Notes under the pieces: generated by a model | Seen by the model: the letters and a program-made list of their open reading frames with translations, nothing else | The model's database searches: none | What the model was told of the DNA's origin: nothing | Made by a program: the position numbers and the translations under genes | DNA from: Kudoa neothunni | Taxonomy: Eukaryota; Animalia; Cnidaria | Assembly (NCBI GenBank): GCA_964304625.1 | Contig: OZ199839.1 | Location: 6,215,200-6,279,199 of the forward strand | Direction: 5' to 3' | Length of the DNA: 64,000 bases | In this document: in pieces, positions 30,039 to 61,443 of the stretch | How positions within the stretch are numbered: the first letter of the stretch is position 1 | Layout: every line of letters begins with the position of its first letter

Positions 30039-33000
30039 ATGTCGGGGAAGTGGAGAACTTTCCAATCAATGCATCTTTTATATTTTTCTAGTACTTTTCA
30101 TTATATTTTTATAATGAACAATTTTTAGTTTTCTTTGGAAAATGTGTTTTTACATCGGAAATTGATAATAATATGATAAAATATCATTTTTCGCAAACAT
30201 CAGAAAAATACATTCTTTTTATTTCGGGATACAATATTGAAAATAGTAACAAAAAATGCGGTCTCCAGTTTTACGATAAAGACGAGTCGACGTTAAAAAA
30301 CATTCCTACGTGCACTACGGATATAAAAGGTAACGATGATGTCCAAACTTCGAAAATGTGCATTTACGAGTGCAAAAAAACAGAATTGAAGTTTAGTGGG
30401 GATGAATTTAAAAAAATTAAATATTTAAGATGGTGTCAAGGGAAAAATGACGATGATGTAAAAAAATGCTATACTAAAAGAATTTTTTCATTCGAGGGTA
30501 TTTAAATCTTTATGTATATAAAAACCACTAGATATTATTATAGACATTTCAATAAAAACTATTTTTGGAGTGGAAAAGGCGAATGATGAATTTACAGTTA
30601 AAGTTAAAAGCAAAAACAATATGGGTTTCACTCATAAAGAAAACTCTGATACTGAAATAATTCAAACACCTAACACTTCATTTTACACAGAATCATCGGT
30701 AAAACTTAAATCGAAATCATATAAATCAAAATATATTCTTGAATTTAACGATAAATCTCCCGAAATATATCTCAATCCAAAAAAACCAGCTGAAGATTGG
30801 TTTATTGCATCTGGAATAAAACAAACTACTAATTCCAAACATTATTACACACTACAATTACAGAACCCAGAACCATCAAAGTTGTGCTACTTTGGTATAA
30901 AAGAAATTAACGATTCACACTTTTCGTCCTCTTGCTCAGATATGAATAAAGCGGGACCATGCATACAACCTTGCTATAAAGCAACATTGTTGCATTCAAG
31001 TGATTTTAAATTCGCTCAAGTGCTTGTTAAATCAATCATTCAATCAACTTCAAAAGAATTCATTCAAACTGTGACATGTATTTATTTAATTTCATTATAC
31101 TTTTAATTGACATTGTAGTTGGCAGCAATCAACCTCTCGTTGTCCGTACAATTAATAATAGCGAAGTAACGTTAGATTTATCTAACTTGAATAAAAACGA
31201 AGATGACACTTCAGGGGATGGAGCAGTGATTACAGAAGTAAAAATAATGGAAAAACACTTTGGGATCGAAAAGGTCGGCGATGATGCAATATGTAAAGAA
31301 AGTTGCACCAGTTTCGCTTCAAAAACTATAACAGGACTTTCACCGTTAACTGAATACATTCTAAAAATTAAAATAATAGGCTTAAAAACTTTAGATTCAG
31401 CTGAAGTGAAACATTATCATCGATATTTTTATTTCAAAACCAAAGGTAATACGATATTGAAAGATTTAAATAAATGCTTAATTAGGGAATGAATTTCAAA
31501 ATGGTAAAGAAATCTCAGTATTGCCTAATATGGGTCAGCATACACAACTATCGCTAACTACCACCAATCTTTTTCCAGCGGGGTTTATAAATGACGCCAA
31601 ATGTGAACTGTATTACTTTGAAGATGGAAATGAGCCATCAAAATTCCCTGCTACTTGCGAGAAAAACAATGAAAAATTTTTTTGTTCTGATGCTTGTAAT
31701 AGTCCTTTTACGATTGTAAACCTTAACCCAAAAACAAACTACAAAATCATTGTTTGCTCCGACGGTTTCACTTGTGCTACTAGCTCGACTATTTCCAGTA
31801 TTTTTTTATATAATAACATAATAGTTATTTTATATAGCCAGTGGCATCGTCTTAACTGTAGAAAAACCAGCAGATGATACTGCAGTGAAAATTACTGCTA
31901 TCACGTCCTCAACGTCAGGTTCTTTTGGAGATTTATGGGGATATATTCTTTTGGAGAAAGAATCTAAAAAAAACCATTTTGGACTGTTTAAATAGCGTAT
32001 GTGATCCTGCGGTACAAACATCGGGAATTATCTCACTTGATATTTCATTGAAGACTATTGATGTTGCAATGATATACGAATTAATAATTATTAATAAAGA
32101 TTTCGCAAAACCAGTGAAATTAACAATCACAAGTAACTTAACTAATTTATAACGTAAATTTAATTATTCTAGGAGATATGGAAGTGACAGAGAATGAATT
32201 AACATTAAAGTATTACACAGCATTGAATAAATACAAAGTGAAATTATGGGAAGATATAGTAATTCACTCAAACTTTGTATGTTCGATAAAAAAATTTAAT
32301 TCTCAATTATCTGAATATGAAAATGCTGGCGAAAATAATTCTAAAATTGAGAAAATCTGTGATAGATTTGATGGATTGGAATCGATTATTGATCTTAGTA
32401 GTGAAGACAAACTGAATTATATTTCCGTTAGATATTTTTTTGTTAATTATGGAATACGCGCCACTTCTGACGGAACTAATATGGTGGTCAAGATGAATAA
32501 ATCTTTAGAAGAAATCAAAGATCGCGATTACAAGAAAGATTTCGAGCTTTTTTTAACCAATATAACACCATTTAATCAAATCAATATACATGACATGTAC
32601 TATATAGGAAGAGTCTATTCATCCTACACAGGTAAAACTAAAATGTACACTAAATTTAAGGTTGTTAAGATTATTTCGAGGAGATTCCGCATATAGCAAC
32701 ATTGCATCAAGATCAAATAAAATTACAAACGAAAAAGTGTTCTCTAAACTGCGAAAGATTTAAGGGTGAACATAAAATGAATCATATAATGGAAACTCAA
32801 GATCATCAAGATTGTACTTTGGAAGTTACCCAATCCAATTTGATGAGTTAGTTGAAGATTATTTTATAAGTTGCCCAAAACATGTTGACTTTCATTATTT
32901 TTATGATAATACTTTTGTTAAAAATACTGCACCAATTTTTAGCAGGTTTTATTATGAATTAGCTGTAGATGAAACAAACAATAATCTAACAGTTAAGCTG

Positions 33001-36000
33001 GTTAACGAAGAACCGTTTAATATATGCACATTTGAATGGATAGATGCTACATCGTCATCTCAAAATAGATTTTATTCAAACATTTGTAAGAATAATAAAA
33101 ACTGTGTTTACAGCTTGTGTAGTAATGTTACGTTTGATAATATTCCAGAAGATGTGAAAGCAGTAAAATTGCGTGTTCTCAAATTAGGGATGGAGCCCAC
33201 TATTGGTTATCAAAACAATATTTACATACGTAATTGTTTATATTCAATAAAATATAATTAAGTATTTTAGTGAAACATGGAAATGACGTTCCTGTTCCTA
33301 CATCTGGTGATAAAATTAAAATTGATATCTCTTCAAATAACAAGGATGAAAACGGTGAAGCTATAACTAGTTCAATACAACCAACTTGTTATCTGCAAAT
33401 GTGGAACGCATATGCTCCACTGGTTAAAGAGAATGGAAGAAAAATTGTTGGTAGTCCAGAAAATTGTAACTTTGCGAAAATGGATATACCAGCTAACCCA
33501 ACTGATGTACCCAACGATATTATGGCTGAAATAATCGGTATACCGCATTATTCACTAAGAAAATACTTTTATCATAAAATAAGTATATAATTTAATTATA
33601 ATAAAAGATATTTATATTATACTAGCTCAAAAAATATGTTGTCTAGTGGGTCTATATCAGTTACTGTAACCACTGATGGATTCAAATTTACACCTGATTC
33701 TACAGTTACAACAATCACATGTTCCATTTATGTGAGAGAACATAATAAATTATATTATTATCCTGCAATATGTACAGGAAGTGAATTGTGCGTAAAAAAA
33801 ATGCAATGATGAATTTACCATTGTGGGGTTATACTCTGGTGAAACCTATGATATAAAAGTGGTACCAAGTGGGAATTACAATTCTGTAATTTTGGAAAAT
33901 AAGAAAACAAGTAAAATTATTTATTTAACATCAAATAAATAATAATTAGCTGGCGAAACCATTGACTTTGAAATTTCGACAGAATCTACAAAAAATAATC
34001 TCAGAATAATTTCAAAAACAGGTATTGACGATGCTAGTACTAAAAATTGCTATTATCAGTTTTATGTTCATGAAGGAACAGACAGTAATAAATATAATCT
34101 TATTTATGTAATTATCTCTTAGATTCACCAACTAAAATATTGCAATCATGTGTTGGATGTGCAAATGATAGTGGAGATATTAAAAATTGCGATGATATTC
34201 AGTTCGGATCTTCCTTATATAACAAAAAGTATAACTACAGATTAATGATATACGTAGGTGAAAAATCTCCTCCATTTAAAATGGCGATTCCAGGTATAAT
34301 TTTTATGTAATGTTCTTATATCAAACGTCATATTTGCAGTCAATCTCGACACAACAGATCAGTCAAAATCAATTAATTTTCAAAAAATAATCATTAAAGG
34401 TGATATATCTAGTTTATTCTAATATATTCTCCACCGAGATGACCTAGAAAGTTAACCTAACAATTTTCAATATAAATTATTGCAGTGAGACCAAATGATT
34501 TGTTTGAAATTCTAAAATTGTCAAATTTAGTTTATTTTGATCGATGATAGTTTATTTTGATCGATGATCTTCTATCTAATCACTAATTATTTCCTGATTG
34601 TAAATAAATTTTCAATTGAACTGAGGTATGTTAAGTATTTGATAGAAATATAATATTTAAATTTTAATCAAGAATCACAATTTCAAGAACTTTTTGAGTT
34701 GTGTAATCTAATATATTCATTAACGAAAACTGGGTTTTTTTTAAGCCCTTTTTCCAACAAGTCGTCATTTACCCAGTGAGAGAAAATTTTATTCTTCACC
34801 AATTACAACATTTACTCGAATCATTTGTTAAATTATACAGTTTTTATCGATGGCTACCATCACAAAAATGTTTCTGATCGTTTCTGCTCTGATGGTTTAA
34901 ACACGAGAAGTTTCAGGTCGTAAGAATCTGAATCAGACAAGCTCTCAATATCGTCATGGGAACGATCCATAATTAATTTTTATATAATATAACTAAACAT
35001 AGTCTTTATATGTTTGGAAAAAATATATTCATATATATTAAACTAAAAAGTAAATATAACGATAGAGATTAGTTTAAAATATACAAGTTTTGAAATTAGC
35101 ATGTCAAAGTTCACTGAATTTATCTTTAGGCGATGATTTCGAAAACTTGTTTTTTCATGTAGAGAAAACAATATTTTAATTAATTTAAAATATTAATTAT
35201 ACGATTTATATATTTCTTTCTATTATTAACGTTCATGAAGTTATTATATTAGAGTTTTCATCCCGAGAAATTCAATATCACAATCTCTACATTTCTAATA
35301 TATTTTTTTTCTTTAAATTTTCATTTAAAAAATGCATGAATACTTAAAATATGGCGGTTATTTTAAACCTAAATTGCGTCCATCTGTGTTATGCATATAT
35401 TTTGTCAATTATTGTGTTATTAATATAGATTTGAAGTAATTTTTAATGTTTTAAAACAAAAGATTCTAAATAGTTAGAATATATGTTTAAAGACTAAAAA
35501 GTGCCGAATTTAATTATAAGTTGCGAGTTTGGTTGCAGTAATATCGTTTTTGATCCAGAAATCTTATAATTTATTTTATTAATTGTTCTGGTAGCCTTGT
35601 CTGGATTTGGGAAAACTAACACAGAAATTTGGTCAGCAAAATAATAATGATATTGGAAAACTCTCCGTAACATTGTCAGAATTTCCCAATGGTTATAAAT
35701 GCAATATAAAAATATCCAACTTTGAAGCTAACCATGATTATATCAAACCAACGTGCGCTCAAGATAATGATACTGAGTATTGCTTGGATAGGATGTGAAT
35801 CAGCCGATATCGAGATTTGGATATATAAATTCGAAAATAGATCGTTATATATCAGTTTGCTATAGTGAAACTGACGAGGAAAGCAAAATCTTGTAAAAAT
35901 GTGAACGTATTCGCCATAAACATGGGTAATTAGAATATTTATTCTATTCCTATATCTAATAAATGATATAAATAACATATTATTTAATAAATTTTAATTA

Positions 36001-38212
36001 TTATTTAGGAACAATACAAAAAAAATACTTATCAATTAAATCACGAAGGGAATGAAATCCGATTTACCTACAAAACAACATCAATAACAGGATGGAAGGT
36101 GTATGTGGATGGAAATGAGAATTCCATTAGCCAATCTAAGGAAACTGAATTTAAACGTGAATAATTATTCCGACACTGTTGAAACTAAACCAACTAATCT
36201 CCCGGGTCGATAGATATATAAATTATTATAAAATTGAATCCAGCCCTTTTGTGGCCTGCATTATTTTATTTACACAAACAATACATTCCTTAATAAAACT
36301 ATTACTATAAGATCTCAAATTATTTATTCTGTATCAACTATTGAAAATAACAATAATCAAATTAAATTAAATTTCACTCCAGGCCCCCTATAACGATGAG
36401 AATGTGCCACATTAAAAGTATATGAGGGTGAATGATGATGATGATGATCCCGATAAAATAGACAGTGTATTGAATGCTTGTGGGACTTTGGCGGATGGGT
36501 GCTATCAACTTTGTCAAGATGGTACCATTAATTTATCCAAAAGTTATCAAAAGGTTGGAGTGATTGTAAAACCAAGATTTGGTTCCACTGGATATAAGCA
36601 ATATTTCACAAGTAATGTATAATTACGTTCGTATAATTTATATTTCAATAGGGGGGTGACCTTGGTTTTAATTTGAGCGAAATCACTGAAACTGGCGTCA
36701 CACTTTCCAGACTTAATAATTATAAGAACATTAAAACAGGCATTAATTCCCAAACATGCACCATTAAAATATCAAGAGCCAATACATTATTCACTGAAAC
36801 AAGTGCTATATGTAATAACGGAAACTGCAACAACAGTTGCGATGAGTCATATTCCATTATCGGCCTTTCGGCTGGAACAAATTATTTAGTTTCAGTGACG
36901 ATCACTGATCTTGGTGTGAATGAGCCTTACATCAAAAAAATGATTTTCAGAACAAGTAACTATGAATGAAAACCATTTAAAATACAAAGTTTTAGGTGGT
37001 GGGACGGTATTGACAGATTCAGATATTGGAGAATACAGTGAATGGTGTAACTGCCACATTGACACCATTTACCAATGTGGATTCATCGTTATATGCAGAA
37101 TTCATCTTAAAAAGAAGGGCGCATCGACCCCAAAATTCATGGCTACATGTGAAGGATTAGGGGCTTGTGAGAACAAATGTCACAGTTCGTTCAAGATTAC
37201 AAACTTACAATTCGGGGTAACTTATGGAGTAATCATCGAGCCAACTGATGGTTACAAGGAAAAAAATATTGATATTACCACGCGTAACAAATATATCTGA
37301 ACTATAAAATTAATTACATTGGATTTTAGTTAATATTGTTACGCGTATAAGTTATACGCTGGACGAAGAAAGTGACATGAAAATTGACGTAATCTTTGAA
37401 GGTAAAAATGACAATAATAAATGTCCATTCATGCTGCATGAGAAGACTAAAAGTGGCATTCCAGAGCCCTGCAGTTACCTGGTGTAATGGTGTGAAGAGG
37501 AATGTTCAGCCAATGGATGTAACATTGATGTTAATGGATTATTGAGAGGAGAAGGATTACAGATTAACAGTGAAAGTGAAGGACCATTCAACCTATCAAA
37601 TCCACGATATTCCATGTAAATAAAAATTATTTTAATTAATTGTATATTTTAACCTATAATAATTGTATTTTATGGAATAAAGATTCAAAAATCAAAAAAT
37701 TTATTGGGGTATTTGAAATATAGTTATATATTTTTAATTATGATTTTAGTATAATTAATTTAAAAATGGGGTAAAATTAATAATATGTAGATGAAAAATA
37801 TCTTAGAAGTGAATATACTAATATTGAGATATTTGATATAGTTCCAATACTAATAAGGAAAGTAGAGGAAGGGTATATTAAATTTTACCAAGTTTTTGCT
37901 AATTTTTAATTAATTTAGTAAAATTAATAGAAATACCTGTATTAAATTTGAAATAATATAACATAGATAGCAAAGAAAAAAGCTGAGCGTGGAAGCAGCA
38001 AAAAATAGAAATCCGTAATTTTTGTTGAAAATTTTGGTATTTTTTAATTTTAAATAGGACCGTTCATCAGATACATGTAAAAGTCAATCGTGGATTCATA
38101 TTGAATTATGTTTAGTATATATGTGATGATACCAATTATGCTCCTTTTGTTAGTGGTGATACTATTGGCTATTTTCAGAAGAAAATCTAAAGATCCTGTT
38201 CACTATCTGTAA
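30039..38212 (+). CDS. Large Cys-rich FN3-like type I membrane protein, paralog 1 (most frameshifted; possible pseudogene)
   Basis: Exon 1 MSGKWRTFQSMHLLYFS|IFFGKCVF; ~22 GT-AG introns at positions shared with paralogs 2 and 3; FN3-like motifs ITGLSPLTEY, IVNLNPKTNY, IVGLYSGETY, IIGLSAGTNY, ITNLQFGVTY; TM IYVMIPIMLLLLVVILLAIF; tail RRKSKDPVHYL*. Confidence 0.85.
34320..35554. mobile_element. ~1.2-kb TIR element in an intron of paralog 1
   Basis: Intron 34294-35594 is ~1.3 kb versus ~40 nt in paralogs 2 and 3. Degenerate ~30-bp TIRs: ATCAAACGTCATATTTGCAGTCAATCTCG / CGAGTTTGGTTGCAGTAATATCGTTTTTGAT. Confidence 0.65.
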
Positions 38213-38429
38213 TATGGAAATAAGAAAATATACACTTTTGTCTAACTAAACAATTAATAGTTGTTAGTTTTACCTATTGGTGATTGTCGTCGTTTACGAG
38301 TCACAAATGTTGAGTTGTTTTATAAAATTAAAGCAATATTTTATAATTAATTTAAGCAAAATCGCAATTTTAATTATATTGCTAATGTAAAGATTGTTAG
38401 ATTAATTAAATATTTTTATCGCCAATACA

Positions 38430-38707
38430 CAGTCGAACCTGGATATAGCGATGTTTTGATATTGAACGTCCTATTTATTAATTTTGGAATTATTGAACTT
38501 TATTTTCAAATTTATTCGTTTTTTAAAATTAAAAATATATACAAAGACATTTTAAAAAAATATAAAATTTTATTTGGTCCCTTATAGCGATTGTGAGGTT
38601 CCATCAAATAACGTAGCTTTTTGCTTTTTGAGGTCGGAGACTCGATATGGCGAATTTTTACAATGACCCCATTTCAGCTTATTATTAACGAAAAAACGAG
38701 ATAATAG

Positions 38708-40724: not shown

Positions 40725-43700
40725 ATGATAGTAATATCGGAAAGGATGAGAGTATTTCTCCTCAATGTGCATCTTATTTTTTACATGTAAAGTTTTTAAA
40801 ATCTTTATAATAACTATTTGTTGTAAGTTTTGATGAGAAATTTTGTCACGACACTCGACATTGATAACAATATAATGAAACTGAATTTTCAATCAAATAC
40901 TAAAAATTTGTTGTAACACTTTCTGGGTACAATATTGAAAAATAGCCACAGGAAATGTGCTCTGCAGTATTATGATAATGATGATAGGTCACTTAAGCTA
41001 TTCCAGATTGTAGCACTAATATTAAAAATGCTAAAGATGATGCAGATTCAAAAAGTTTGCATTTATGATTGCAAAAAAATTGAAATAGAATTTGACTATG
41101 AGAAATTTAAGAAAATTAAATATTTAAGATGGTGTCAAGGGAAGGGCGATGATGTAATAAGGTGCCCTATTAAGAGAGTATTTAATGTTAAAGGTATTTA
41201 AATATCATTTATTGTTTAACAATTATTATATAAAGAGCTATACATAAAAAGTGCTCACACTGTTGTAAAGAATAATTACGATTTTTTCGTTTCCGCTACA
41301 AGTAAAGTCAATAAAGGCTTTTCTATCAAAGTTGACGATACAGAAGAAACTAAGCAGGATCCAGACAGTGACTTTTACACTGCGAAAACTAAAGCTCTTC
41401 ACACAAAATCATTTCAACCAAAATATTTGGTTATATTCAATGATCAATCCCCTGAGATATTTCTCAATCCTAAAAAACAAACTGAAGATTGGTTTATTGC
41501 AATTGGAAACATACAAACTGCTGAAAAAGGACATTATTATACAATACAGCTACAGAACCCAGAACCGTCAAAGTTGTGTTACTTTGGTATAAAGGAAATT
41601 AATGATTCACACTTTTCTTCCTATTGCTCAGATATGAATAAAGCGGGACCATGCATACAACCTTGCTATAAAGCAACATTGTTGCATTCAAGTGATTTTA
41701 AATTCGCTCAAGTGCTTGTAAAATCAGTCGGCCAATCATCATCAAAAGAATTTATCCAAATTGTGACATGTATTTAATTGAGTACTTTTAACTTTTTTAT
41801 AGTTTTTTAGTTTGTAGCAGTCAACTCTCCGTTGACCATACGGATAATATTGGTCAGATGACTCTTGATTTATCTAACTTGAATAAAAACGAATGTGAAG
41901 ATGCAACGATCGGAGGGGCGACTACAGGAGTAAAAATAATGGAAAAACATTTCGGGATCGAAAATATCGGCAAAGATGCAACATGTGATAATGGTTGCGA
42001 CGGTTTTGATCAGAAAATTATAACAGGGCTCTCACCATTAACTGAATACATTTTAAAAATTAAGATAACAGGGTTAACGACCATAGATTCACCTGAAGTG
42101 AAACATTACCATCGATACTTTTATTTCAAAACTATAGGTAATATTGTATTTAAAGGTTTATCTAGATGGTAAATTAGGTAAAAAATTTGAAAGTGGAAAT
42201 CAAATTTCATCAACTACTAATAATATTGAGAATACAAAACTTTCGCTATCTATCACCAATCTCTTTGTCGCTGGATCTAATAATGACGCCATATGCGAAC
42301 TGTACTACTTTGAGGATGTAAATGATCCAGCAAAGTTCCCTGCTACGTGTGAGAAAGATGAAAAAAAAAATTTTTGTTCTGATACATGCACTGGCCCTTT
42401 TAAGATTGTAAACCTTAATCCAAAAACGAACTATAAAATCACTGTTTGCTCCAAAGGTTACACTTGTGCTGATACCTCTAAAATTTCTAGTACTTGATAT
42501 ATATAATAGCATGTCAATTATTGTAAACAGCTAGTGGAATTGTTGTTCAGTTGACAAAATCAGAAGATACTTCCAAAAAACAAACGACTGTCACCATGTC
42601 TCCTTCTAGTGGAAGCGGAAGCCCGGGCAGTTCATGGAGTTACATTTTGATAAGAAAAAAATCTTTAGAAACGATAATTGATTGTTTGAGCGACTGTGTT
42701 CCCACTTTAACCTCAAATAATATTGTTTTTGAATGGCAAATTCTCACTGCTGATATTGCTTATGAAGTAGTTGTAATTAATGATGATTATGCTTTTCCAG
42801 AGAAAATTGACATATCAAGTAATTGATTAATAGAAAAATAAATGTAATTGTTTTAGGTGGAGTCGTTGATGGTGATCAAAAAATGAATATACGATTTGAT
42901 TCAACAGGACAAAAATATAAAGTGAAATTCAAGAGTGAGTTGTTCGCCAGTATTGATAAAGATTGTATGGTTAGAATATTCAAATATGAAATCACTGATT
43001 ATGTGCATGGCGATGAAGATAATAGGGAAATCAAAAAAAGGTGCAGCATGCTTAATACAGAATTTATCATTAAACATAATGGGCAAAACAAACGAAATTA
43101 TATTTCGGTCACTTATTCGGTCACTAGAATACCTGAGCGTGCTAAAACCGTGTTTGCTAAAGCAAAAATGAACGAAGTTTTTGATGGTGTTTACGACATT
43201 AGCGATAAAAAATATACTCAGAAGTCACAACTAGCCAGATCAGAAGATTCAGAATCAGGATCTAAGGGTGACGGGACAATAACACCAAAAGTACCAGATG
43301 GAGTAAAAAAGCCAAGGGAGGGAGGAGATCTACAATTAGAGGTAGAAGTACAAGCAAAGCCAGAACCAATTACCTTCACCAAAGGGTGGGTCTTTTCCTA
43401 CTTCATTGGTAATATCAGTTTTAGTAATTACTGTATCTTTTTTAAGATTATTATGAGGAGATAACGCATGTTGTGACATTGAATGGAGACAAATTAAAAT
43501 TTTCCGTAAACAAGTGTCCATTAACCTGCGATGGATACAAAGATAAAACGAAGCTAAGTTCCTTCTCTAGAACTCAATGTGGATTGTCTTGTAACAATGA
43601 TAGTTGCTCAATTCAATTCGGCGATTTAATTGAAGATTATTACATAAGTTGTCCAACATATTTCGATTTTCACTATTTTTATGACAATACTTTTATTCAA

Positions 43701-46700
43701 AATTATGCACCTGTCTTCAGCAGATTTTATTACGAATTAACGATAAATGATGCAAATAGTAAACTCACTGTTAAATTGGTTAACGAACAACCTTCTGAAA
43801 TATGCACATTTGAATGGATTGACGCAACTGCATCATCTTCTAATAGATTTTTCTCAAACACTTGTGAGAACAATTCAAATTGCGTTTATAGTTTGTGCAG
43901 TAACGTTACATTTGGAGATATTCCAGAAGATGTAAAAGCAGTAAAAATACGTGTTCTCAAATTAGGAATGGAACCTACTGTTGGTTATCAAAATAATATT
44001 TATATATGTGATAATTTAAATTATATGCAATATAAATATATATTATCTAGTGAAACACGGCAATGATACTTCTGTGACTACATCTGATGACGGTAAAATC
44101 AAAGTTAATATTGCCGATAAAATTAAACACGAAGATGGGAATGTTGTAAATGGTGGTCCTGCTGCATCGTGTGAGTTGAAGTTTTGGAATACATATGCTC
44201 CATTAGTTAGCGAAACCGGGAGGAAAATTGTTAGCGAGATAAGTCCATGTACCATTGGAGAAATGAGTATTACACCGAATCCAACCAATTTGCCAAATGA
44301 TATTATGGTAACAATAAAAAATATACCAAATTTTTCTCCTAGAAAATACTTCTACCATAAAATAAGTAACTTTTAATAATTTAAAACCGTATAATATATT
44401 TTTTAGGCCCATCAATTTCTCTTTCTAATGAAGAGGTTACTGTTAATTCAAGTGTTAATGGATTCACACTCACTCCAAAGTCCGGATTAAATAATATTTG
44501 CAAAATTTATGTAAAAGAGAATAATACCCCATATTATTACCCTGCTATATGCTCAGGTGGAAAATTGTGTGCGGATAAATGCAGTGCAACCTTTGTTATC
44601 GTTAATTTACATTCGAATACCAATTATGCTATTAAAATTGTACCTAGTGGAAATTATGCGGTAAAAACAATCGAGAATAAAAAAACAGGTACGAATTTTA
44701 TTTATTGTTAAATATAATATAAATAGATGGTACTACAATCGAATTCGTAATTTCGTCTGATTCTAAGAAAAACAATCTTAAAATAACACCGACAAAAACT
44801 TATGATACTAATAGTATTATTAATTGTTATTATCAATTTTATGTACATGATAAAGAAGACAGTAATAAAAGTAACTTAACTTTTGTAATTTATTTTTAGC
44901 TTCCCCGACACGTATACAACAGTCATGTGTTGAATGCGATAAAGGGCCGAATAGTAGTAATAATAGTAATAATAAAAAATGCAAAAATATTAATTTTGGT
45001 GATAAGATCTATAACAACAAGCATAACTACAGATTAATGATTTATGTAGAGGGAGAATCTTCGCCATTTAAAATCGCAATTCCGGGTAAAATTAGTTTGA
45101 TTTTGTGTGTAATATTTTCTTAGCCTTTTCTCGAACTGGAAAACTTACACAAAAATTTACACAACAAAATCAAGATAAAATTGGAAAACTATTCATTACC
45201 TTGTCAGATTTTCCAAATAATAATAAATGCGCAATAAAAATATCAAATTTTGATGAGAATCCACAATTAATTGAACCTACCTGTTCCTCAACTGCTAAAA
45301 ATGGTTACTGCATATTGGAATGTGGAAAAGAAAATGCTGAAATAGGTTATGTTAATTCTAAGGTTGATCGATATATATCTGTTTGTTATGGTGACACGGA
45401 TGAAAAAGCAGAAACCTGTAAAAAGGCTAGGGTCTTTCCATTAATAATGGGTGATTATAATAAATATTTTTCTTGAATTGTTAAATAACTTTAAAAATTA
45501 AATTAACTTGTTTCATTTTCTAATTCCATTAATTTTATATTATTCATTATTTAATAGATTACAATCAAAAACATACTTATACTCTAAGCCATCTTAATGA
45601 CAAGGTTAGTTTCGCCTACACAACGAACTCAAAAACACAATGGATGGTATTTGTCGATGAAAAAAATGACCCGAACTCCGACACTGAAAAAAATAATTTG
45701 AATATAATAAGTTACCTCAGATAAAATAGCGGAGAGGTTCGCGACATTATCAGTCGATAGATATATGAGTTATTATAAAGTTGTCTCAGCAACTTTATGG
45801 CCTGGAATATTCTATTTTACTAATACCACCTTTCTGAATAGCACTATTCCCCTGAAATCAGAGATTATTTATTCCATAGCAACTTTTGGAAATAACAATA
45901 ATCAAATTAAAATTAAATTCTCCCCTGGTCAGTATAACGATGAAATGTGTCGCATAATAGTATTCAAGGTGAGTGATAATGGCGATGATCAATTAAATGA
46001 TGTTTTAAATGTTTGCGATAAATCAGAGGAAGGATGCTACCAACTTTGTCAAGATGCAGTTATTAATTTGAAGGGAGATCATCAAAAGATTGGTGTAATA
46101 GTTAAACGAAGAATTGATTCTGTTGGCTTTAAACAATACTTTAAAAGTAATGTTTAATTTTTTTATAAATTTAATTGTTCATAGGAGGAGACAATAACTT
46201 TGAATTGAGTGAAATTACTGAATCTGGAGTTACGCTTACTGGTCTACACAACTACAAAATTATTAAACAAGAAGAAAATGAAGCAGAATGTACAATTAAG
46301 ATTCGTAAAGCAAATACGATATCTTCTGAAACGACGGCTACATGTAACGATAATGTTTGTGACATTAATTGTAAAGATTCATATACTATTACTGGCCTTA
46401 CAGCCGGTACAAATTATATGATTTCCGTCACAGTTTCGAATCTTGGTTTTAAGGGTCCGTATGTTCAAAAACTTGCTTTTAGAACAAGTACAATTTAACT
46501 ACAACCCTCATGAAATTTAAAAAAATTTAGTTGAAGGAATTGAGTTAGTTGCATTAGCAGATTCAGATTTAACAATTAATGGTGGTAGCGCTATTTTAAC
46601 ACCCTTTCAAGCTAATGATTCACTTCCAATATGTCGAATTTACCTTAAACAAAAAGATGAAACGTCTCCAAAATTTATGGCTACATGTGATGGGATTGGA

Positions 46701-47735
46701 AAGTGCGAGCATAAATGCAACAATACATTCAAAATAGTAAATCTCGAATTGGGTGTTACTTACGAAGCAATCGTCGAACCGTCAAATGGGAGAAAAGAGA
46801 AAAAATTTGAAATTAAAACAGGTGATAAATATTTTCTTACTTTAAATTAGAAACAATAATAGATAACGTCATGACGAATGTTGCGGTAACATACGACAAA
46901 GATAGTGAAATAAAAATTGACGTAAATTTTGATAAAAAAGATAACCCAAAATGTCCATTCATGCTACATGAAAAAACTGATAATAACATACTGGGGCCAA
47001 TAATTCTTTGGTGCAGTGACGAAGAGGAATGTTCAGCCAATGGATGCGTAATTACTCTCAACGGGCTATCGAGGGAAAAGGATTATAAATTAAGTGTGAA
47101 AGTGAAGGACTTGTCGACTTATAGAATCCATAATATTCCTTGTAAAATATAACCTTAAGATTTAATAATTTCATTAAAACAAATAATAATTTATATGATA
47201 AAGACTTGAATATTTCAAAATCCCAAGGGTGAGATTAATATTCTTAAAACTAGATATATATATATATATTTAATGATATTTTTAGTAAATTCTACATCGA
47301 GATTGATGTAATCTGAATATTTATATAAGAGCATAACATAAGGAGCGAATATATCAATATTATGGTAGATGGTATTGTTCAAAAAATAATTAGGAAAGTT
47401 GAAACGGGGTAATAATATCATTATTTAACTGTTATAATTAAATTTATTTTAGTATACTTTTTTTAAATTTATTAACACTAAAGATACATGTAGATAGTAA
47501 AGAACAGTACGACCAAGAAGCTGCGAAAAATATTAATTCGTAAATATAAAAAGATGTTTCATATTTTTAATTTTTTATAGATCGGTTGGAAAATATATGT
47601 AAAGTAGTATTTATTTCTTCGTAACTTATTGTTTTTAGTGTTTACGCAATGATTCCAATTGTGGCTGGATTATTGGTAGTGATCGGATTAGTAATTTACA
47701 ACAGAAAACCCAACGACGATGCATATGAGTTGTAA
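40725..47735 (+). CDS. Large Cys-rich FN3-like type I membrane protein, paralog 2
   Basis: Same exon series as paralogs 1 and 3; hydrophobic N-terminus (MCILFFTFLMRNFVT); six FN3-like signatures; TM IVYAMIPIVAGLLVVIGLVIY; tail NRKPNDDAYEL*. A few 1-nt indels (~40755, ~40905-41055, ~45715). Confidence 0.88.
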
Positions 47736-49350
47736 GCACACTGATTTAATCATAGATTAATTTTTATTATTATTATTCAAAAGATATATTATTATATATT
47801 AGTATTTATGATAGTTATTTTTATATTTTTTATTCGATTTAACTACAATATATTTTATTGTTCCTGTGTGTGTTATTTAGTGAGTTGTACGCGACACTCT
47901 GCTAGAAAATTTCATAAAGTTATTTCACATTAAATTCATTGTCATTTGAGGTTGCGATTATTCTTCAAAATAGCTAAAGAATTTTTTTCATTCATTAAAT
48001 ATTTCTGATACACATATTTATACTTAAACATCGAATTTAAATCTATCTACTATATATACACTAGCACAGGGTTATTACGTAGCATGGTTATTGCGCACTT
48101 TTAGAAATATTGTCGAAAATTCAAAATATACAAATTAACTATAGATAGAAATCGTGAGATAATAGTAAAATATATCGATAAATACAATTATGAAATAATT
48201 TTTTCGTTGGGAAAAATAGGAGTACATGCTTATTGAGCAACCAAATTCTGTTGTCCGATTATGTTGGCATGGATAGTACACAGTAGGAAAATATGAAAAA
48301 TTATCGCTTACATGAAGAAAATGTGTAGATTATTAAATAATTGAAAAATTTGGAACTAAGAGTGGCGCTAAAGCGAATATCTTTAGGCGCTCCGTCCTTA
48401 AATCTGTCACCACATTGAATACAATTGTATCAATAAAATCAAAAATATTTTCAGAAATTATTTCAAGTGATTTAAAATTTTATTGCAAAACTCTTATAAA
48501 AACTTTCCAACTACTCGATATAAGAATTAACGAATTGATCAAACATTCGAGAACTTGAAATATAGAGCTGTCCAGAGAGTACAATAAAATAAGAAAATAA
48601 ATTAACCAATAGCATAAAAGACGTCACAAAAGACAACACTCCTGTAACTGTCAGCAGAGGACAGTTCGATGAGTTTGTTTCGAGAGTTAGTCTAAAAATG
48701 AACAAATTAAATAGAAAATCTAACAAAAATTAAGAAATTATTCCAGATCTATCACACCGAAATGAGGGCACATTAGAAAATAAAATAAATTAAACTTCGT
48801 TTAGAACAAGAGAAATAACAAATTTCTTGTTGAAAAAATAATTCTCTCTTAAACTACCTTATTCATTTTCAAAATACTCTGTGAACAATAAAATAATTTT
48901 TACGAAAATTTTTCACATCCTATTAAAGTTATTAATAGTGAAACGAGAGAATACATAAAAAAGCAGAAAAAGTGGTAACACACCCACCAAATTTTTCCCC
49001 ATGTGCGCCGACGCTGAAAGAGTGTCTGTCAGCGATGGCAATTTCGTTCGTTCAAAAATTTGGAGCTGTAATTTCTTTCGCGTTCGTTCATTAGTATTTT
49101 GTGAAAATTTTGAGTTTTGCAAGCGAATACGAACTTATCATCCCCGCCTCAGACTAATGAAAGATTCTAAATGTCGAAGTCTAGGAAAGTTGGTAACAGT
49201 CATTTTACCGAGACCTACCAGCAACTCGAGCTCCGAGAGGGTTTCTTCTAATAGCGAAAAAGTCCGTAGAAGAGATCGTTCACACATGAACTCATTGACC
49301 TTGTTGAAACTGCCGGTCTATTCCAATAATAATGTTAATAAATGTAACTA

Positions 49351-50810
49351 CAGTCGAACCTGGATATATATTGTGCAATTTTTTGGGAATGGTAACTAAT
49401 TACGCAATAGGGAGATTTTAAGAAATACAAGTTATTGGTGCAAGCGCGTTACGTATAAAAAACAAAAATTTATTCGAGTTTAAAATTATTGGTAATTTCA
49501 GTTTGTTTGCATCAATTTTTGATTATTTCAGATATGAACTCCATAACTGGGTGTTTTGAAATTAATGTTGTTGAGTTTTCTAATATAAACGTTTTATGAT
49601 TAAATTAATTGAATATTTGAGTTCCCCAGTTGACACAAGCGTTTTATCATTTACAAAGTTTGGATCGACATTTTTTTAAATCTTTCAACTGAGTACGCTT
49701 CAGGTAAAGCTATTGATTCTCCATGTATTTTTTTCTCTTCTTCAATGTTGCTGATTTCCTTATATTTTTTTATCAAAAAATTAAAGTTGATAAACAATTA
49801 AATAGTGTAACGAAATTTTCAACATTATTTTTAGAAAAATCTTGATTTAAGTTTTTATTATCTACTAATGTTTAATTTAATATATTGAAGAATCAAAATA
49901 CAATGTTCAAAATTCTAGATTATCTTCAGCAATTTTGAATAATAGTCGATGACACGTTTTCCGATGCTTGTTTTAAAGTTTTTATTAAAACAAAAACGGT
50001 ATACATAAACAAATTTGAATTATTCGTATTTAGTATGTTGCACTCTTCGTATTCTAGTGAAATTTCTGGGAACTTTACAGAAAAAATTAACCAAAATTTG
50101 AATATTCACATTGTTTGTTTCACCATGAAATTTTTTATAATTAATTCCTAGTTTATGCTTAAATCCCATGAACCAACCGTTACTACCGGTGAATTTTTCA
50201 ATACCTATGGATTTAGCATTACTTTTCGTTTCTTGCAAAATTAGGTGAGCAGAAAAAATCTTTTTCTCATTTTGCGTTTTAGTTATCCAAGGAAAGAATA
50301 AAGTATCTAATTCCGCGCACTTGTCTTCTTTTATTTTTTTTTTCGAAGCGGAACCAGCAAAATTAATAATATCGTATCAAGAAGCCAAGATTCTATTAAT
50401 TGTAGTGTACCTTGAAAATATATTATATTGTGGTTAGATAATTTCATATTATTAGATGTCTTAGGATGTTTAAAAGTCGTTGCTTTTTCTCCTTTGAGTG
50501 ATTTAATCGAATTACAATATTCGATAATTTACATTTTTTTCAACCACCATTCGCTGATTTTTTACAATTTTTTTGGCAGAGTTAAAAAAATGATTAATTG
50601 AGGATTAAATTGAACAATCTGTTACGCAGTAGCGAGATTTTAGTTTTAGTGCAATATCTTAAATTTATACTTCTCTAGTAAAACATTTTCATCTTTGTTC
50701 GATCTTGTAACATTAATTTAAATGATATATAAGAAAATTTTAAGTTAAAATTATGATATCCTTTATATTTCAATAAACTTGTGAAATTACGAAATATTCA
50801 AGTTCGACTG
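49351..50810 (-). mobile_element. pogo/Tigger transposon, internally deleted
   Basis: TA|CAGTCGAACCTGGATAT ... ATATTCAAGTTCGACTG|TA; CENP-B-type HTH peptide FTGSNGWFMGFKHKLGINYKKFHGE at 50020-50238. Confidence 0.88.
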
Positions 50811-53176: not shown

Positions 53177-53519
53177 TATTCAACATTACTGTCATAATTT
53201 TTACCTATTCTTAGGCATGTGCGAATGGCAGGTATCAATTAAATTCATATTTATAACATTAAATTACATTAAAATAACCGTTCATTATTCAGTGATTCTA
53301 TTCATTAAGTTTTAGTAGTTATTTTTATACAAACATAATATATTAATAGTATGATACTATTCGTTTTTTATTTAATATATATATATATATATATAATAGA
53401 CCGAAGAATAAATAATTATTTTACGATTTACCTGTATAATGAATAATTCGGAAAGTCTAATATACGTAAAATGAAGTGATTTTAAGGTTAAAATGCTGGA
53501 TAGTGGCCGCATGTACCGA

Positions 53520-54036
53520 TTAAAGATTATATTTAGACCGAGCATTAATCATAGATTTTTTAAATCAAATTAGTATGATATTTGTTGAACATTTAATTAT
53601 CGGAATGAATGGATTTCATCTAATGAATTATCGAAAATAATTTACTAGAAGCATTTGATACAATTAATCAGCTAATAATTGTATAAAATAGTGAATTTTA
53701 TTTATTAGAGACATAAAATTAATTAATAATTGGGGATAGCTAACGAGAAAATTGTAGCAATCCATTATAATCACCATTGCCACACTCAAATTTATGGAGA
53801 AATAAGGGTTACGTTATTAGTAACATTGAGTGTTAGTGCCTGTAGCAATAATTAAGAGATAATAAGAGTTCAATGTACTATTACAACAACTAATGTTGAT
53901 AACTAATAGAATGACATAAATTAATCTAATAATAATGATGCAAAATTGATAAATACAAAAATTAAAATAATTAATAGGTTCGTTTTAGTCAGTTGTCGCT
54001 GATTAGAATTACGGCCGCTGTTCTATATTTAAACCT
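53520..54036. repeat. Dispersed ~500-bp repeat, copy C (uninterrupted)
   Basis: Same orientation as 5010-5480 (TTGATACAATTAATCAGCT..., AAAATAATTAA.AGGTTCG...). Confidence 0.75.
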
Positions 54037-54380
54037 TTAGTATGATACGAACTGGTTGTATTGACTTGCACGTATGCTTCTCGTATTAAATTGCACATCA
54101 TGAGAGTTGATTAAAATCATAATAATAACGAATTATTTTCATAGTTCTCGTTAATCCCATGATAAAAATTTGTTTTTCTAAAATATTGTTTCTAATAACA
54201 CTAATAATTATTAATTAATAGGATTATTTTAGTTTTATTCATGGATAACGATTGATTTTATTAAAAGTGGAATTTGTAATTATTCGGGCTAAATGAAAAT
54301 GATTTACGACTTATTATAATATATTAATGTAAATATCCTTCGTGAATACAAGTATTATTTTTGTCATAAAATCTCCAAAA

Positions 54381-57300
54381 ATGATTTTATCATCGTTTAA
54401 ACAGAGATTTGTCCTAAAATTATGTTTGTTTATTTTTTCACGTATTCACTCAAATTATTTCGTACTTTTAATATTTATTAGCAATAATGAATAAATTGGT
54501 TTCTACACAAGATATTGATAATAATTTAATGAACTTGAATTTTTCGCCCGATCAAAATAAATACGTTGTTTCTTTAGCTGGTTATCACATTCAAAATAGC
54601 TACAGAAAATGTTCCCTACAATATTACGGTAGTAAGACTTCCTCTTTTAAAGCTATTCCAACGTGCAATACTGATATAACGACTGCTAATGCAAACGTTG
54701 ATTTCACTTCAGAGAAATGCATCTATGATTGTAAAAAAGTGGAATTGAAATTCAATTGGGACCAAATTAAGGAAATGAAATATTTAAGATGGTGTCAAGG
54801 AAAAGATGAGGAAGATGTCAAAAAATGTCCCTTAAAGAAAGTTTATAAAATCAATGGTAATTTCGATACATATGCCATTATAAATAATTTTTGGTTAGAT
54901 ATATATCTTAAATCTACATTGGGGGTAGATCGTGCAATCGGTCAATTTACTGTGCGCATAAAAACTAAAATCGATAAGGGTTTCATTCTCAAATCTGACT
55001 CTATTGATGAAGTTATTCATGCTGCAACTAGCCGTTTTTACACGGTAGAATCAATTCAACTAAAAACAAAATCATATCAACCAAGATATATTGTTCAATT
55101 TAATGATAATTCACCTGAAATATTTCTGAATCCCAAAAAACCTGTCGAAGATTGGTTTATTGCAACGGGGTCAAAATCAGGATCTGAATCTATGTATTAT
55201 TTCACAATAATACTTCAAAATCCCGAGCCGTCCAAGATGTGTTACTTTGGAATAAAACATATTAACGACTCACACTTTTCATCTTATTGTTCTATAATGA
55301 GTAAAGCTGGTCCGTGTTTTCAACCTTGTGATAAGGCGACATTATTCTATGATTCAGATTTGAATTTTGCTCAAGTACTTGTAAAATCAGTTGGACAATT
55401 AAGTTCAAAAGAATTTATTCAAACTATTATATGTATTCCATAATTATCTCAAAATTTTATAAAATTATGTAGTTCGAAGTGAACATCCCACCGACGCTTT
55501 TTCGGCTAAACAAAATGATCAAGTTAGGATTGATCTATCAGAACTAAACAAAAATGGTGAAGACCAAAATAAAGTTGACAAAGCACAAATTACAGAAATG
55601 AAGATAATAAAAAAGTTTATGGGAACAGAAAGTATCGGAGATGATGCAACCTGTACAGATGACTGTAATGAATTCGCTTCAAAAACTATAACGGGGCTTG
55701 AATCGTTAACTGAATACATTTTAAAAGTGAAAATAAAGGGTCTAACAACAGTAGATTCGCTCGAAGTGGATCATTATCATGGTTACTTCTATTTCAAAAC
55801 TACAGGTAACAACCAAGATAAAAAAATATATATCAAATTATTTAATAGGGAGGGATTTTATTTATAACAATCAAATTACACCTAGCGCAGATAATAAGGT
55901 ACATACAAAATTGACTTTAACACCGTCCAGTCTTTTTTCTACTGGATCTACCAACGCCAACGATGCAAAATGTGAACTATTTTATTCTGTTGGAAATGAG
56001 AAATCCCAATTTCCTGCTACTTGCGAAAGAGATGCAAAAAGATTTTTTTGCTCAGATATCTGTAAAAATGAATTCACCATTATAAACCTTGATCCAGAAA
56101 CAAGCTACAAAATAACTATCTGCTCCAAAGGTTATACATGTGCTGAGAGTAACCCTGTATCGAGTAATTTTTATGTAAGTCAAATTTTTCTTAGTTTAAA
56201 TAGCAAGTGGTAGTACTGTTACCATAATTAAATCAGACGTAACTACAGCACGAAAGATCGAGGCTACAATGTCTGCTGCTCCTAATGGAAATATTGTGAA
56301 TTCCTGGCGTTATATTTTATTGGAAGAAAAATCCAAGAAAATTATAGTGGACTGTTTAAATATCGTTTGTGCTCTTGAAGCGCAAACAGATTTAGGATCA
56401 AAAAAACTAAACGTTCCATGGGCTACTATTGACGCAGAAGTTTTATATGAATTAGTTGTGATAAATATGAACCGTGCAAAACCAGTCAAAAAGAAGATAG
56501 AAAGTTATTAAAAAATAAGCGGAATTAAATATATTTAATTAGGAGCCACCGAAGAAGAGACAAGCGAGATGATTCTAACATATGATAAAACACGAAACAA
56601 TTATAAAGTGAAATTTACAAGTGCTCTGTTCGAGAACAATAATAAACAATGCACAATTAAAAAATCTGACAAAACGCTGTCTGCATACATCAATGCTGAT
56701 GATGGTAGTTCAGCAATTGAGAAAACTTGCAACCAACTTAAAACTGCTTTTAATATTGACCTTAGTAGTGGAAACAAGCTGGCTTATATTTCAGTTACGT
56801 ATTCGGACACGAAACCTTCTTCCCCTATTAAGCCACCTAAAAGTCTATCAAGTCTCGCTAAAGAAAATAATGAAGAAACCTCCCATGGTAATTACGTAAA
56901 TGTGGAAAAAGCTTATATTTCTAAATCTATCATAGAAAGGTTAGAAAGATCGCTTCCTGATAGCCTTAGCGTACCAGGGGGGCAAAGAATCGATGGGCCA
57001 GCTGATTTACAAGGAGCTCCAGTAAATGGAAATCCAAGTCATGATAGCAACGGAACCGAGAAAAGTGAAACTGCAAAAATTGAAGATAAAAAAAAAGATG
57101 CGATAAAGAAAGAGCAAGAGGAATCAACGCCACCACCAAATATCAATTTTACTGCAGGGAAGGTCTATTCGTATTACATAGGTAAATCTGTTTTGGGAAA
57201 TTATATAATGTTATTAAGATTTTTACGAAGAAATAACGCATGTGGCAGCATTACAGGGAGATAAAATAAAATTAAATGTTAATAAATGTTCTTTAAATTG

Positions 57301-60300
57301 TGATGGGTATAATGATAAAAGGAAGCTAGGTTCCTTCTCCACTGCTACAACTGGGTCACCATGTAACAATGATAGTTGTGCATTTCAATTCGACGAATTA
57401 GTTGAAGACTATTACATAAGTTGTCCTAAATATTTTGACTTTCATTATTTTTATGACAATACATTTGTGAAAACCAATGCACCATTTTTCAATAGATTTT
57501 ATTATGAATTAGCTGTCAGTGATCCAGTTAATAAGTTAACGATAAAATTGGTTAACGAACAACCTTCTGAAATATGCACATTTGAATGGATTGACGCAAA
57601 TGCATCATCTTCTAATAGATTTTTCTCAAACACTTGTGAGAACAATTCCAACTGCGTTTATAGTTTGTGCAGTAACGTTACGTTTGGAGATATTCCAACA
57701 GATGTAAAAGCAGTAAAAATACGTGTTCTCAAATTAGAAATGAGGCCTATTGTTGGCTATCAAAATAACATTTATCTTTGTAATCGTTTAAATGATGTAT
57801 TATATAAATATATATTCTAGTGAAACATGGTAACGATACTTCCGTTACTTCATCCGATAATAATATAAACATAAACATTAGCACTAATAACAAAGATGAA
57901 GATGGTGCAGCACTTACCACTGGTACCGCCCCAACATGTCAACTCAAGATCTGGAATGTATACGCTCCATTGTTTAAGGAAACTGAAAGGAAGGATGTTG
58001 GTCAACCTAATAGTTGTAACTTTGGAAAAATGATCATTACACCAAATCCAAATGATTTACCAAATGATATTATGATAACAATAGCAAATATACCGAGTTA
58101 TTCGCCTAGAAAATACTTTTATCATAAAACTGGTAGTTTATGTAGATTTTGCAACTTATTTTACAAATATAGATCAAACAACTACTCTTTCTGGTGGGTC
58201 AATATCGGCTACGCCAGCAACAAATGGATTCACACTTACTCCAAGTTCTACAGTTTCAGAAAGCACGTGCTCCATTTATGTGAGAGAAAAGGATAAATTA
58301 TATTATTATCCAGCTATATGCACAGAAAATGAATTGTGTATAAAAAAAGTGTAATTTGCAGTTTACTATCATTGGATTGTACTCTGGCGCCCGACTATGA
58401 TATTAAGATTGTACCTAGTGGCCAATATAAGGTTCATACTCTTGAGGGCCAGAAAACAAGTAAAAACATTTGAACTTTTTGTGGATAATAATAATAATAA
58501 TTAGTTGGTAAAACAATTCAATTCATAATATCACCTGAGTCCAAAAGAAATAATCTTAAAATAATATCGAAAGAAAGTATCGAGAATGATTCCCAGTGCT
58601 GACTGCTATTATCAATTTTATATGCATAAAGAAGGAAACAGTAATAATAAAAATATTTAATTCTTTAATTTAGTATTTAGCTTCATCAACAAATATACAA
58701 CAGTCTTGCGTTGAATGTGCTGATTCATCGAGTAGTCGAAAAAAATGCAATGATATTCAGTTTGGTTCAGGCTTATATAATAATAAGCATAATTACAGAT
58801 TAATGATATATGTAAATAACAAATCACCACCATTTTAAATTAGAAATTCCAGGTAAAAAAAATATAAATATTTTTTAATATTATGAGTAGCTTTTTCCCG
58901 ACATGGGAAACTACATCAAAAGTTTGAAAAAGCAGTTAACAACGATATTGGGAAAATCTATGTTAAATTATCAGATTTTCCAATTGGGGATAAATGTGCC
59001 CTAAAACTATCCAATTTCGAAGATGTCCACAATTTTTTGAAGCCAAGTTGTACAACGAACACTGACAATAACTTCTGCATAACTGAGTGCACGTCCCAGA
59101 ATATTGAAATTGGATATGTTAATTCCAAAATTGATCGTTATCTATCAGTATGTTATGGCATAGATGATACTGATGCGAAATCCTGCAAAAAATCTAGAGT
59201 TTTTCCAATTATAATGGGTAATTATAATAAATATTATTTTAATAATTTAGTGATATTGGCATATTATAATTCAATGTTTTTAGATTATAATCAAAAGCAT
59301 ACTTACTCTATAGCTCATACAGATGGTAAAGTTCGTTTTTCCTACAAAACAAACTCAAAAACCGAATGGACGGTGTATGCTGATGGAGAAAAAGACTCAT
59401 TTAGCGATTCAGAAAAAACCAACTTGGACGTTACCAGTTACTCTGATTCAATAACAGATAAAATCTGCAAGTTTCGTTGTTGACAGATATATGAGTTACT
59501 ATAAAATTAACTCAACACTATTGTGGCCAGGAATTTATTATTTTACGAATACTACCCTATTTAATGACACTATTCCTCTAAAATCAGAGATTATATATTC
59601 CATTTCAGCCGTTGAAAATAACATTAATAACTTGAAAATTCGATTTTCTCCTGGTCCCTATAATGACGAAATGTGCAAATCACTATATTTCAAGTAGATT
59701 CTACTGGCAAAGATAAAACAGAGAATGTTTTGAACGTCTGTGAAAATAAAGAGAATGGTTGCTATCAACTTTGTCAAGATGCTATTATTAACTTCACAGG
59801 AGACCATCAAAATGTTGGGTGTGATTGTTAAAAGAAGATTTGATTCGGCTGGTTTCAAACAATACTTTAGAAGTAATTGAAATCCAACATTATTAATAAA
59901 ATTTTTTAGGAAACGATATTGGTTATAACCTGACAGAAATCACAAGCAACAGTGTTAAACTTACTGGGCTTCAAAATTATAAAAAAAATTAAAAAAGAAA
60001 AATAATCCTCAATGCACAATTAAAATATCTAGAGCAAATACTATATCTACTAACACCATGGGCTCGATGTAGTGGTGGTGAATGTAATAAAAACTGCGAT
60101 GAGTCATATTCGATTACTGGCCTCTCAGCTGGTACAAGTTATATAATTACAATAAAAGTTACAAACCTTGGTGTGAATAATGATTATATCAAAAAAGTTT
60201 TCTTTAGAACAAGTAAATGTAGCTTGTGATCATATTATTAATTGTATTTAGTTGATGGAGAACAGCTAACAGAATCAAATTCTCCAAACGCTATCATTGC

Positions 60301-61443
60301 AAGCACTGCTACTATTATACCTTTTCAAGCAGACAATTCGTTCTCATTGTGCAGAATTTATCTACAGAAAAAAGATGATTCAAATGCAAAATTTATGGCT
60401 TCGTGTGAAGAAACAGGAATCTGTGAAAATAAATGTGGCAGTTCATTCAAAATCGTTAACCTAGAATTGGGAATAACATACGATGTTATTGTGGAGCCAT
60501 CTGATGGCAAAAACCTAAGAACCTTCGAATTTGCTACTAGTATTAGATTTTTGAATTTATTATTATAAAATAATTAATAGTTAACGTCGATACATCGGTT
60601 ACTTACACATCTTATGGTGATAGTGGTATAGCAATTTAATGTATTGTTTACTGAGAAAAAGGAAACTTCAAAATGCCCGTTTATGTTTGCACGAAAAAAA
60701 CAGATGTTGGCAAACCAGAACCAATAATTTTTTGGTGTAATGACGATGAAGAATGTTCATCCAACGGTTGTAATATTGGTATCTACGGATTATCCAGGGA
60801 AAAAGATTATAGGTTGACTGTGAAAGTGAAGGATTTATCGAAATATAAAATTCACGAGATTCCATGTAATTTTGAAATTAATATCTAACTTATTGTTTTT
60901 GGTTAACTAATAATATGATGTATTGAAAGACTCAAAAATATCAAAACATTCAGGGTAAAAAAAAATATTTTTAAATTATTTTAATATATTGTTTAGTAAA
61001 TTTTTATGGATTATTTTGAAACTAACATACCAGCAGAAGAGCAAAATATAAGAAGTGAATATACAAACATTGACGTAGGTGATATTTTTCAGAAAAAGAT
61101 TATAAAAGTTGCACAAGGGGTACATTGCATACTTTCGAACTTTTCTAATATATTTTTAGTAAATTATGATAATAAGCTGTTTTAAAAAATCTGTAGATAG
61201 TGAAAGAAAGCACGAATATGAGGCCGCCAAGAACAGTCATTCGTATTTTAAATAATATTTTAATTTTTAAATTAATTTAATTTAGGTCTGTTGGAAAATA
61301 CATGTAATGATAATTTTGTGTAATCTTTTGGAATAATTCTTTCTAGCTGTTACGCAATGATACCAATCGTAGGAGCATTGCTAGTAGTGATAGGTTTGGT
61401 CATGTTCCGAAGGAAACCCCAAGACGTTGCTTACGATTTATAA
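54381..61443 (+). CDS. Large Cys-rich FN3-like type I membrane protein, paralog 3
   Basis: Exon 1 MILSSFKQRFVLKLCLFIFS|PIMNKLVST; same introns; FN3-like ITGLESLTEY, IINLDPETSY, ITGLSAGTSY, IVNLELGITY, IYGLSREKDY; TM ICYAMIPIVGALLVVIGLVMF; tail RRKPQDVAYDL*. Several +1 indels (~58345, ~58391, ~59462). Confidence 0.88.

Follow-up and report, generated by a model that had tools for sequence, protein, structure and literature searches.

Large families of membrane-anchored surface proteins with short cytoplasmic tails and recombining sequences are the usual signature of parasite surface repertoires. Large, clustered, recombining variant surface families of protists and fungi include Toxoplasma SRS, Plasmodium 6-Cys and var, Pneumocystis Msg and trypanosome VSG, of which SRS and 6-Cys also use disulphide-stapled beta-sandwich repeats, though their fold differs from that of the proteins described here. 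Within the Myxozoa, antigenic variation has been proposed for Sphaerospora molnari, which has 18 VSP genes resembling those of diplomonads: a signal peptide, a Cys-containing ectodomain with over 10% Cys and more than five CxC/CxxC motifs, one TM helix and a short tail (10.64898/2026.02.11.705288). Fibronectin type III (FN3) folds occur at the host interface in the taeniid oncosphere antigens EG95, 45W and TSOL18, a variable multigene family of surface or secreted proteins thought to be adhesins, in which EG95 has a single FN3 domain and a GPI anchor (PMC2671473). In cnidarians, the clustered, single-pass Alr proteins of Hydractinia carry, with one domain per exon, 1-3 V/I-set Ig domains plus one FN3-like domain that has three Cys but lacks the E-F Leu and Tyr corner, and often end in ITAM/ITIM tails (PMC9546547). 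Finally, canonical FN3 repeats (Pfam PF00041), which have a strand-B Trp and no disulphides, build fibronectin, titin and the ectodomains of RPTP and DCC/neogenin.

Here we describe three genes of Kudoa neothunni, a myxozoan parasite of tuna muscle related to jellyfish. They belong to a family of at least about 240 predicted membrane proteins built from Cys-rich FN3-like domains. On sequence evidence alone, with no RNA or protein data, this family is a strong candidate for the parasite's variable surface coat. Kudoa species live inside fish muscle and spoil commercial catches, and some cause food poisoning, yet in the papers we could search nothing describes the molecules they show to the host. 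The published genome paper does not mention fibronectin, surface or multigene families (PMC12239612), and literature searches, which did not cover subscription papers, found no description of the family.

Gene structure and predicted domain architecture

The window, the whole stretch of 64,000 nucleotides analysed here (contig OZ199839.1, positions 6,215,200 to 6,279,199), contains the following features.

30039..38212 (+): gene 1, long form, 22 exons, about 1,960 aa; about 22 frame breaks as assembled, most in 35787-38068
40725..47735 (+): gene 2, long form, 22 exons, about 1,990 aa; breaks in exons 1-2 (about 40765-41048) and one at about 45716; the ATG at 40725 is out of frame with exon 2 as assembled, the one at 40765 is in frame
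54381..61443 (+): gene 3, long form, 22 exons, about 2,030 aa; no break in the first 3.96 kb, 12 breaks in 58343-61111
40828..42818 (+): gene 2 cassette 1 (exons 2-6; six domains, exon 3 holds two)
42857..45085 (+): gene 2 cassette 2 (exons 7-12; exon 8 holds two FN3-like domains, exons 11+12 one)
45124..47141 (+): gene 2 cassette 3 (exons 13-17)
44407..44688 (+): exon 10 of gene 2, one four-Cys module with a predicted FN3 fold, the one modelled
43130..43370 (+): hypervariable charged/Pro/Ser-rich insert in exon 7 of gene 2 (approximate ends; about 56810-57140 in gene 3)
47204..47735 (+): gene 2 stalk, TM helix and 11-aa tail (exons 18-22)
47228..47493 (+): two consecutive [D1,2]-type nested twin introns (47228-47329, 47408-47493), inferred from DNA only; also gene 1 37708-37790 and 37872-37966, gene 3 60954-61036 and 61119-61196
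30859..31027 (+): gene-conversion tract shared with gene 2 (41551-41719)
43773..43965 (+): gene-conversion tract shared with gene 3 (57545-57737)
34294..35594 (+): enlarged intron 12 of gene 1 (1,301 nt)

The observation made in the preliminary description, three same-strand genes with a common exon order that encode giant single-pass proteins, is confirmed. We built a model of an unbroken paralogue outside the window (L034, 1,938 aa) and aligned the three genes to it with introns and frame breaks allowed. All three have 21 introns at the same codons and phases, with GT (or G|GT)..AG ends intact in 63 of 63. Introns 1-19 are phase 1 and most are 37-46 nt, and the exonic length is 5,893-6,084 nt. 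Each gene shows one strong hydrophobic peak near the C-terminus (KD 2.7-3.2), followed by an 11-aa tail. Judged by hydropathy alone, the N-terminal leader is clear in gene 3 and in L034 and a second outside paralogue, L033 (KD 1.6-1.9), but weak in genes 1 and 2. The preliminary description had counted the Cys cluster plus E-F motif at least six times; it recurs more often, in about 10 four- or six-Cys modules among about 18 domains, with 63-66 Cys per protein. The frame breaks, the 1.3-kb intron 12 of gene 1 and the nested twin introns had not been reported.

Exon 10 of gene 2, folded with 35 modules, gives a seven-strand beta-sandwich model at pLDDT 87. Its top structural matches are nearly all FN3 domains, the best being fibronectin EDB (Z 9.9, rmsd 2.1 A over 83 residues, 11% identity). 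Exon 8 is predicted to fold as two such sandwiches (pLDDT 76), with weaker FN3-type matches (Z up to 7.5). The remaining domains are assigned by profile match and Cys pattern, and the match is weak for exons 6 and 7. Four Cys, the E-F loop Leu (L67) and the Tyr corner (Y73) are invariant in the 35 modules, and Pfam fn3 is recovered in 9 of 35 (best E 6.7e-6). In common with canonical FN3 proteins, the domains are mostly encoded one per phase-1 exon. They differ from the canonical domain in having four (two to six) invariant Cys around strands C-C'-E, no strand-B Trp (1 of 35 modules has any Trp), 6-21% identity, a six-domain higher-order cassette and hundreds of paralogues.

A known conserved receptor of the usherin, RPTP, ROS1 or DCC type in disguise is very unlikely. 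The generic E-F signature does hit such proteins, but Pfam scans of single exons gave nothing but weak fn3, with no LamG, EGF, Ig, PTP or kinase domain in any exon scanned. The stop codon lies 11 aa after the TM helix, there are about 65 long paralogues where such receptors have single-copy orthologues, and none of the long FN3 proteins hit has the four-Cys motif. A PDB sequence search with the exon-8 profile was blank, and Atlas features gave generic FN3 for exon 16 and nothing for exons 2-3. Of the conditions named beforehand as potentially refuting, those accessible from sequence and models, namely usherin, PTP or RTK domains, a full-length known relative, or modules not folding as beta-sandwiches, did not materialize, although our searches and folds were made exon by exon and were limited in length, so that full-length relatives may have been missed. 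Compared with the other systems, the proteins have about 18 or 7 domains, retain the E-F Leu and Tyr corner and give no Ig hit, which excludes Alr membership. They contain 3.2-3.3% Cys and 0-1 CxC/CxxC motif, which excludes the VSPs, although the basic tail of the short form described below is like the VSP motif. At 840 or about 1,950 aa with a TM helix and charged tail, they are not EG95/45W antigens, none of which appeared among the hits.

A family of long and short genes on all three chromosomes

The 40.26-Mb genome lies in four contigs, of which the three large ones are 17.15, 12.04 and 11.05 Mb, and one end carries a (TAAACC)n array. The published assembly (40.2 Mb, N50 12.0 Mb, three chromosomes, one telomere with that motif, median intron 49 nt, 5,316 predicted proteins) was built from about 7x HiFi k-mer coverage of an infected yellowfin tuna (PMC12239612). 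Exon 13 finds about 65 long-form loci, with all 129 candidates scored, and these pair with the close exon-8 hits. A second class, 23-31% identical in exon 8, proved in four modelled loci to encode 840-aa proteins with a leader, seven domains, a TM helix and a basic tail, without twin introns. At least 173 such loci are listed, capture-recapture gives about 216, and a first look had 472 candidates. Both classes occur on all three chromosomes in clusters, and 69% of short genes have a neighbour within 25 kb against 23% at random. Profile comparison pairs short exon 3 with long exons 8, 3 and 14; short 4 with 15; short 5 with 10, 16 and 5; long 2 with 13; and long 4 with 9 and 15. The long protein is therefore three copies of the six-domain cassette of the short form.

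These data partly support the interpretation in the preliminary description. An undescribed, lineage-restricted and diversified type I membrane family of Cys-containing FN3-fold modules is supported, whereas its placement in a TE-rich accessory region is not: the window holds a housekeeping MCM helicase gene, the genome as a whole is 45.6% repeats (PMC12239612), and the family is spread over all three chromosomes. Likewise, the genes are not a three-gene array but part of a family of about 240 or more.

Relatives also exist outside this genome. Across 1.84 billion representatives, full-module hits among the best 150 were short unnamed fragments, and the long hits were generic multi-FN3 proteins, none with the four-Cys motif. 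The fragments come from four samples (ERZ28624939, SRR33849685, SRR31175926, SRR33529766). Their contigs are AT-rich, those we modelled share the intron positions, and two samples hold both long and short forms in multiple copies. We infer that they derive from other marine myxozoans.

Sequence evolution and possible roles at the host interface

Among long paralogues, dN/dS ranges from 0.19 in the two-domain exon 8, the most conserved part at 65% identity, to 0.47 in exons 6-7, showing purifying selection. Among close pairs exon 6 reaches 0.68, and a single exon-7 pair reaches 1.27. As exon averages these values are below 1 in every exon with enough pairs, so there is no direct sign of antibody-driven positive selection. 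Exon 7 carries the hypervariable insert and varies from 126 to 221 aa across 21 paralogues, with a mean identity of 36%. Genes 1 and 2 share a 169-nt tract at 96.4% and genes 2 and 3 a 193-nt tract at 96.9%, against 66% overall and far above shuffled controls. Synonymous differences fall to 3/61 inside against 28/80 outside (family median 43% for the same tract), and 5/53 against 24/43 for a third gene, which rules out selection as the cause. The nearest neighbour changes from exon to exon, and twenty tracts of 120 nt or more at 93% or more occur among 30 loci, though some lie between generally closer pairs.

We propose, with moderate confidence, that these genes are members of a Kudoa-lineage superfamily of type I membrane proteins that form a diversified, non-enzymatic coat or adhesin repertoire at the parasite-host interface. 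Our analysis establishes a chain of FN3-fold domains (folded directly for three of about 18), invariant Cys, one TM helix, a tail too short for a catalytic domain, the number of long and short genes, the triplicated cassette, purifying selection, tandem clusters, segmental gene conversion and one hypervariable insert. Beyond this point the model is inferred, including expression, surface location and switching. The Cys would form disulphides that staple the C-C'-E side of the sandwich and stand in for the lost core Trp, and the proteins would reach the plasma membrane as rods of two heights (roughly 25 and 65 nm at about 3.5 nm per domain). Duplication and conversion would keep reshuffling exposed surfaces on a conserved scaffold, and different cells or stages might show different subsets, thereby blunting fish antibodies and/or tuning binding to host tissue. 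Several observations temper this view: no RNA run was found to hold the stretch, the genes are not confined to subtelomeres, we saw no expression site or silent-cassette archive, gene conversion is common in any tandem family, and the leader is weak in genes 1 and 2. A family equal to about 4.5% or more of the predicted gene count in a reduced genome, missed by domain annotation, is nevertheless an obvious candidate for this interface. It provides concrete targets for expression, serology and binding tests, and allows antigenic variation in myxozoans to be addressed outside Sphaerospora. It also adds a variant FN3 domain with inferred Cys stapling and a clear case of a giant protein made by cassette triplication.

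Alternatively, though we consider it unlikely, the family could serve parasite-parasite recognition or adhesion, working like Alr, clustered protocadherins or short Dscams. Isoform-specific homophilic binding would then sort cells during cell-in-cell development and spore assembly, or tell strains apart in the annelid host. The cnidarian precedent for Cys-modified FN3-like folds in single-pass proteins with one domain per exon (PMC9546547), purifying selection on every member and the conserved hydrophobic C-terminal end of the long-form tail, which resembles a PDZ-binding motif, would fit this view. However, there are no Ig V/I-set domains or ITAM-length tails, about 240 genes is far more than a few-celled animal seems to need, and variability is highest mid-rod (exons 6-7) and not at the tip. 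A similarly tentative possibility is a sub-functionalised set of host-ligand receptors or decoys, co-expressed and not switched, in which tandem FN3 pairs bind host cytokines, immunoglobulin, matrix or muscle-cell receptors and each paralogue has its own ligand. The conservation of exon 8, the cytokine-receptor FN3 pairs among its fold matches and the presumed adhesin role of taeniid FN3 antigens (PMC2671473) speak for it, but those matches have Z 7.5 or less, tied with fibronectin and others, and show only a common fold. In addition, no WSxWS-type motif was seen, and conversion would erode fixed ligand specificities.

It is doubtful that the proteins are structural material of the spore valve, cyst wall or polar-capsule membrane, cross-linked through their cysteines. 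They are Cys-rich, repetitive and cnidarian, and an even Cys number in nearly every domain fits a disulphide-rich extracellular protein, but even, invariant Cys sets point to bonds within domains, and structural proteins rarely need hundreds of divergent, recombining copies. A bolder hypothesis, unlikely on present evidence though not excluded, is true antigenic variation in an animal parasite. In this scenario single Kudoa cells would express one or a few of about 240-400 FN3-based coat genes, switch between them and refresh the repertoire by gene conversion, with nested twin introns ahead of the TM exons possibly gating membrane-bound against shed forms of the long class.

Frame breaks and unusual introns

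As assembled, genes 1, 2 and 3 have about 22, 5-6 and 12 breaks of 1-2 nt and no true in-frame stop, with the breaks clustered in 35.8-41.05 kb and 58.3-61.1 kb. This raised the possibility of a pseudogene array or a mostly dead, passively amplified family, which we consider very unlikely. Window positions 28431-37769 have a near-identical twin upstream, just before a 200-N scaffold gap at the window's start, which may be an uncollapsed haplotype. The two copies differ by 3 substitutions and 44 gap events, 39 of them single-base; 17 of 23 breaks in gene 1 fall on such differences, and only one break lies near the same codon in both. This is the pattern of read error and not of decay, where 6-7% of substitutions would make stops. 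For genes 2 and 3 the same cause is probable but inferred: gene 2 exon 2 differs from L033 by five single-base indels and 12 substitutions. A homopolymer-context test of the breaks was only weakly positive (25-40% against 16-17%), and we therefore rely on the two-copy comparison. Furthermore, 148 of 150 short-form exons are open, most long-form loci are unbroken over 3.6 kb, and dN/dS is well below 1. A TE-borne repeat was likewise rejected, and a comparison of upstream regions revealed no shared motif beyond AT-rich words.

Introns 18 and 19 have the layout of [D1,2] stwintrons, in which an internal intron splits the external donor between G and T (PMC12403724). The arrangement G|GT..AG|T..AG is present in 10 of 10 cases in five genes, the five long genes examined, and in a distant relative at about 30% identity, and it is needed to keep the TM helix in frame; two-step splicing is inferred from the DNA alone. 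Finally, the enlarged intron 12 of gene 1 is shared at about 80% with two paralogues (L015 and L018), and is thus an old subfamily trait and not a disabling insertion.

Other genes and transposon relics within the window

Besides the three long-form genes, the window contains the following features:

About 15400-17500, - strand: MCM replicative helicase gene, with Pfam MCM, MCM_OB and MCM_lid matches
1-about 800, - strand: proline-rich gene fragment, WIP/verprolin-like by eye
23472-23807, 48959-49396, 50023-50376; 2332-5478 and 23863-25523: transposon relics (piggyBac-like DDE, weak hAT, Tc5/pogo HTH) and MITE-like inverted repeats; a related copy lies just upstream of gene 3 (about 53650-54040)

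Copies and members of the family elsewhere in the genome

Window positions 28431-37769 have a near-identical 9.3-kb twin at 6205700-6214999 of contig C2, differing by 3 substitutions and 44 indels and ending at a 200-N gap right before the window. This twin could represent either an uncollapsed haplotype or a very recent duplication, and our family counts may be slightly inflated by such twins. Scattered single-base frame breaks are also carried by the short-form genes L035, L036 and L038, and automated annotation of this assembly therefore probably fragments many family members. In addition, three loci at 2.58-2.62 Mb of contig C2 (L089, L047 and L074) constitute a third, more divergent subfamily of the same superfamily, apparently with a different intron set. 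Although most members are internal, we found dense clusters of short-form genes near two chromosome ends, at C3:68000-460000 and C1:16.3-16.9 Mb (29 and 17 listed loci per Mb).

A broken 18S rDNA copy

At locus L001 (C2:5424779-5428248), from about 1965 onwards, an 18S rDNA copy breaks off near model position 1157 into AT-rich DNA with a C2H2-zinc-finger-like ORF. It is possible that this is an R2-clade, 18S-targeting retrotransposon.
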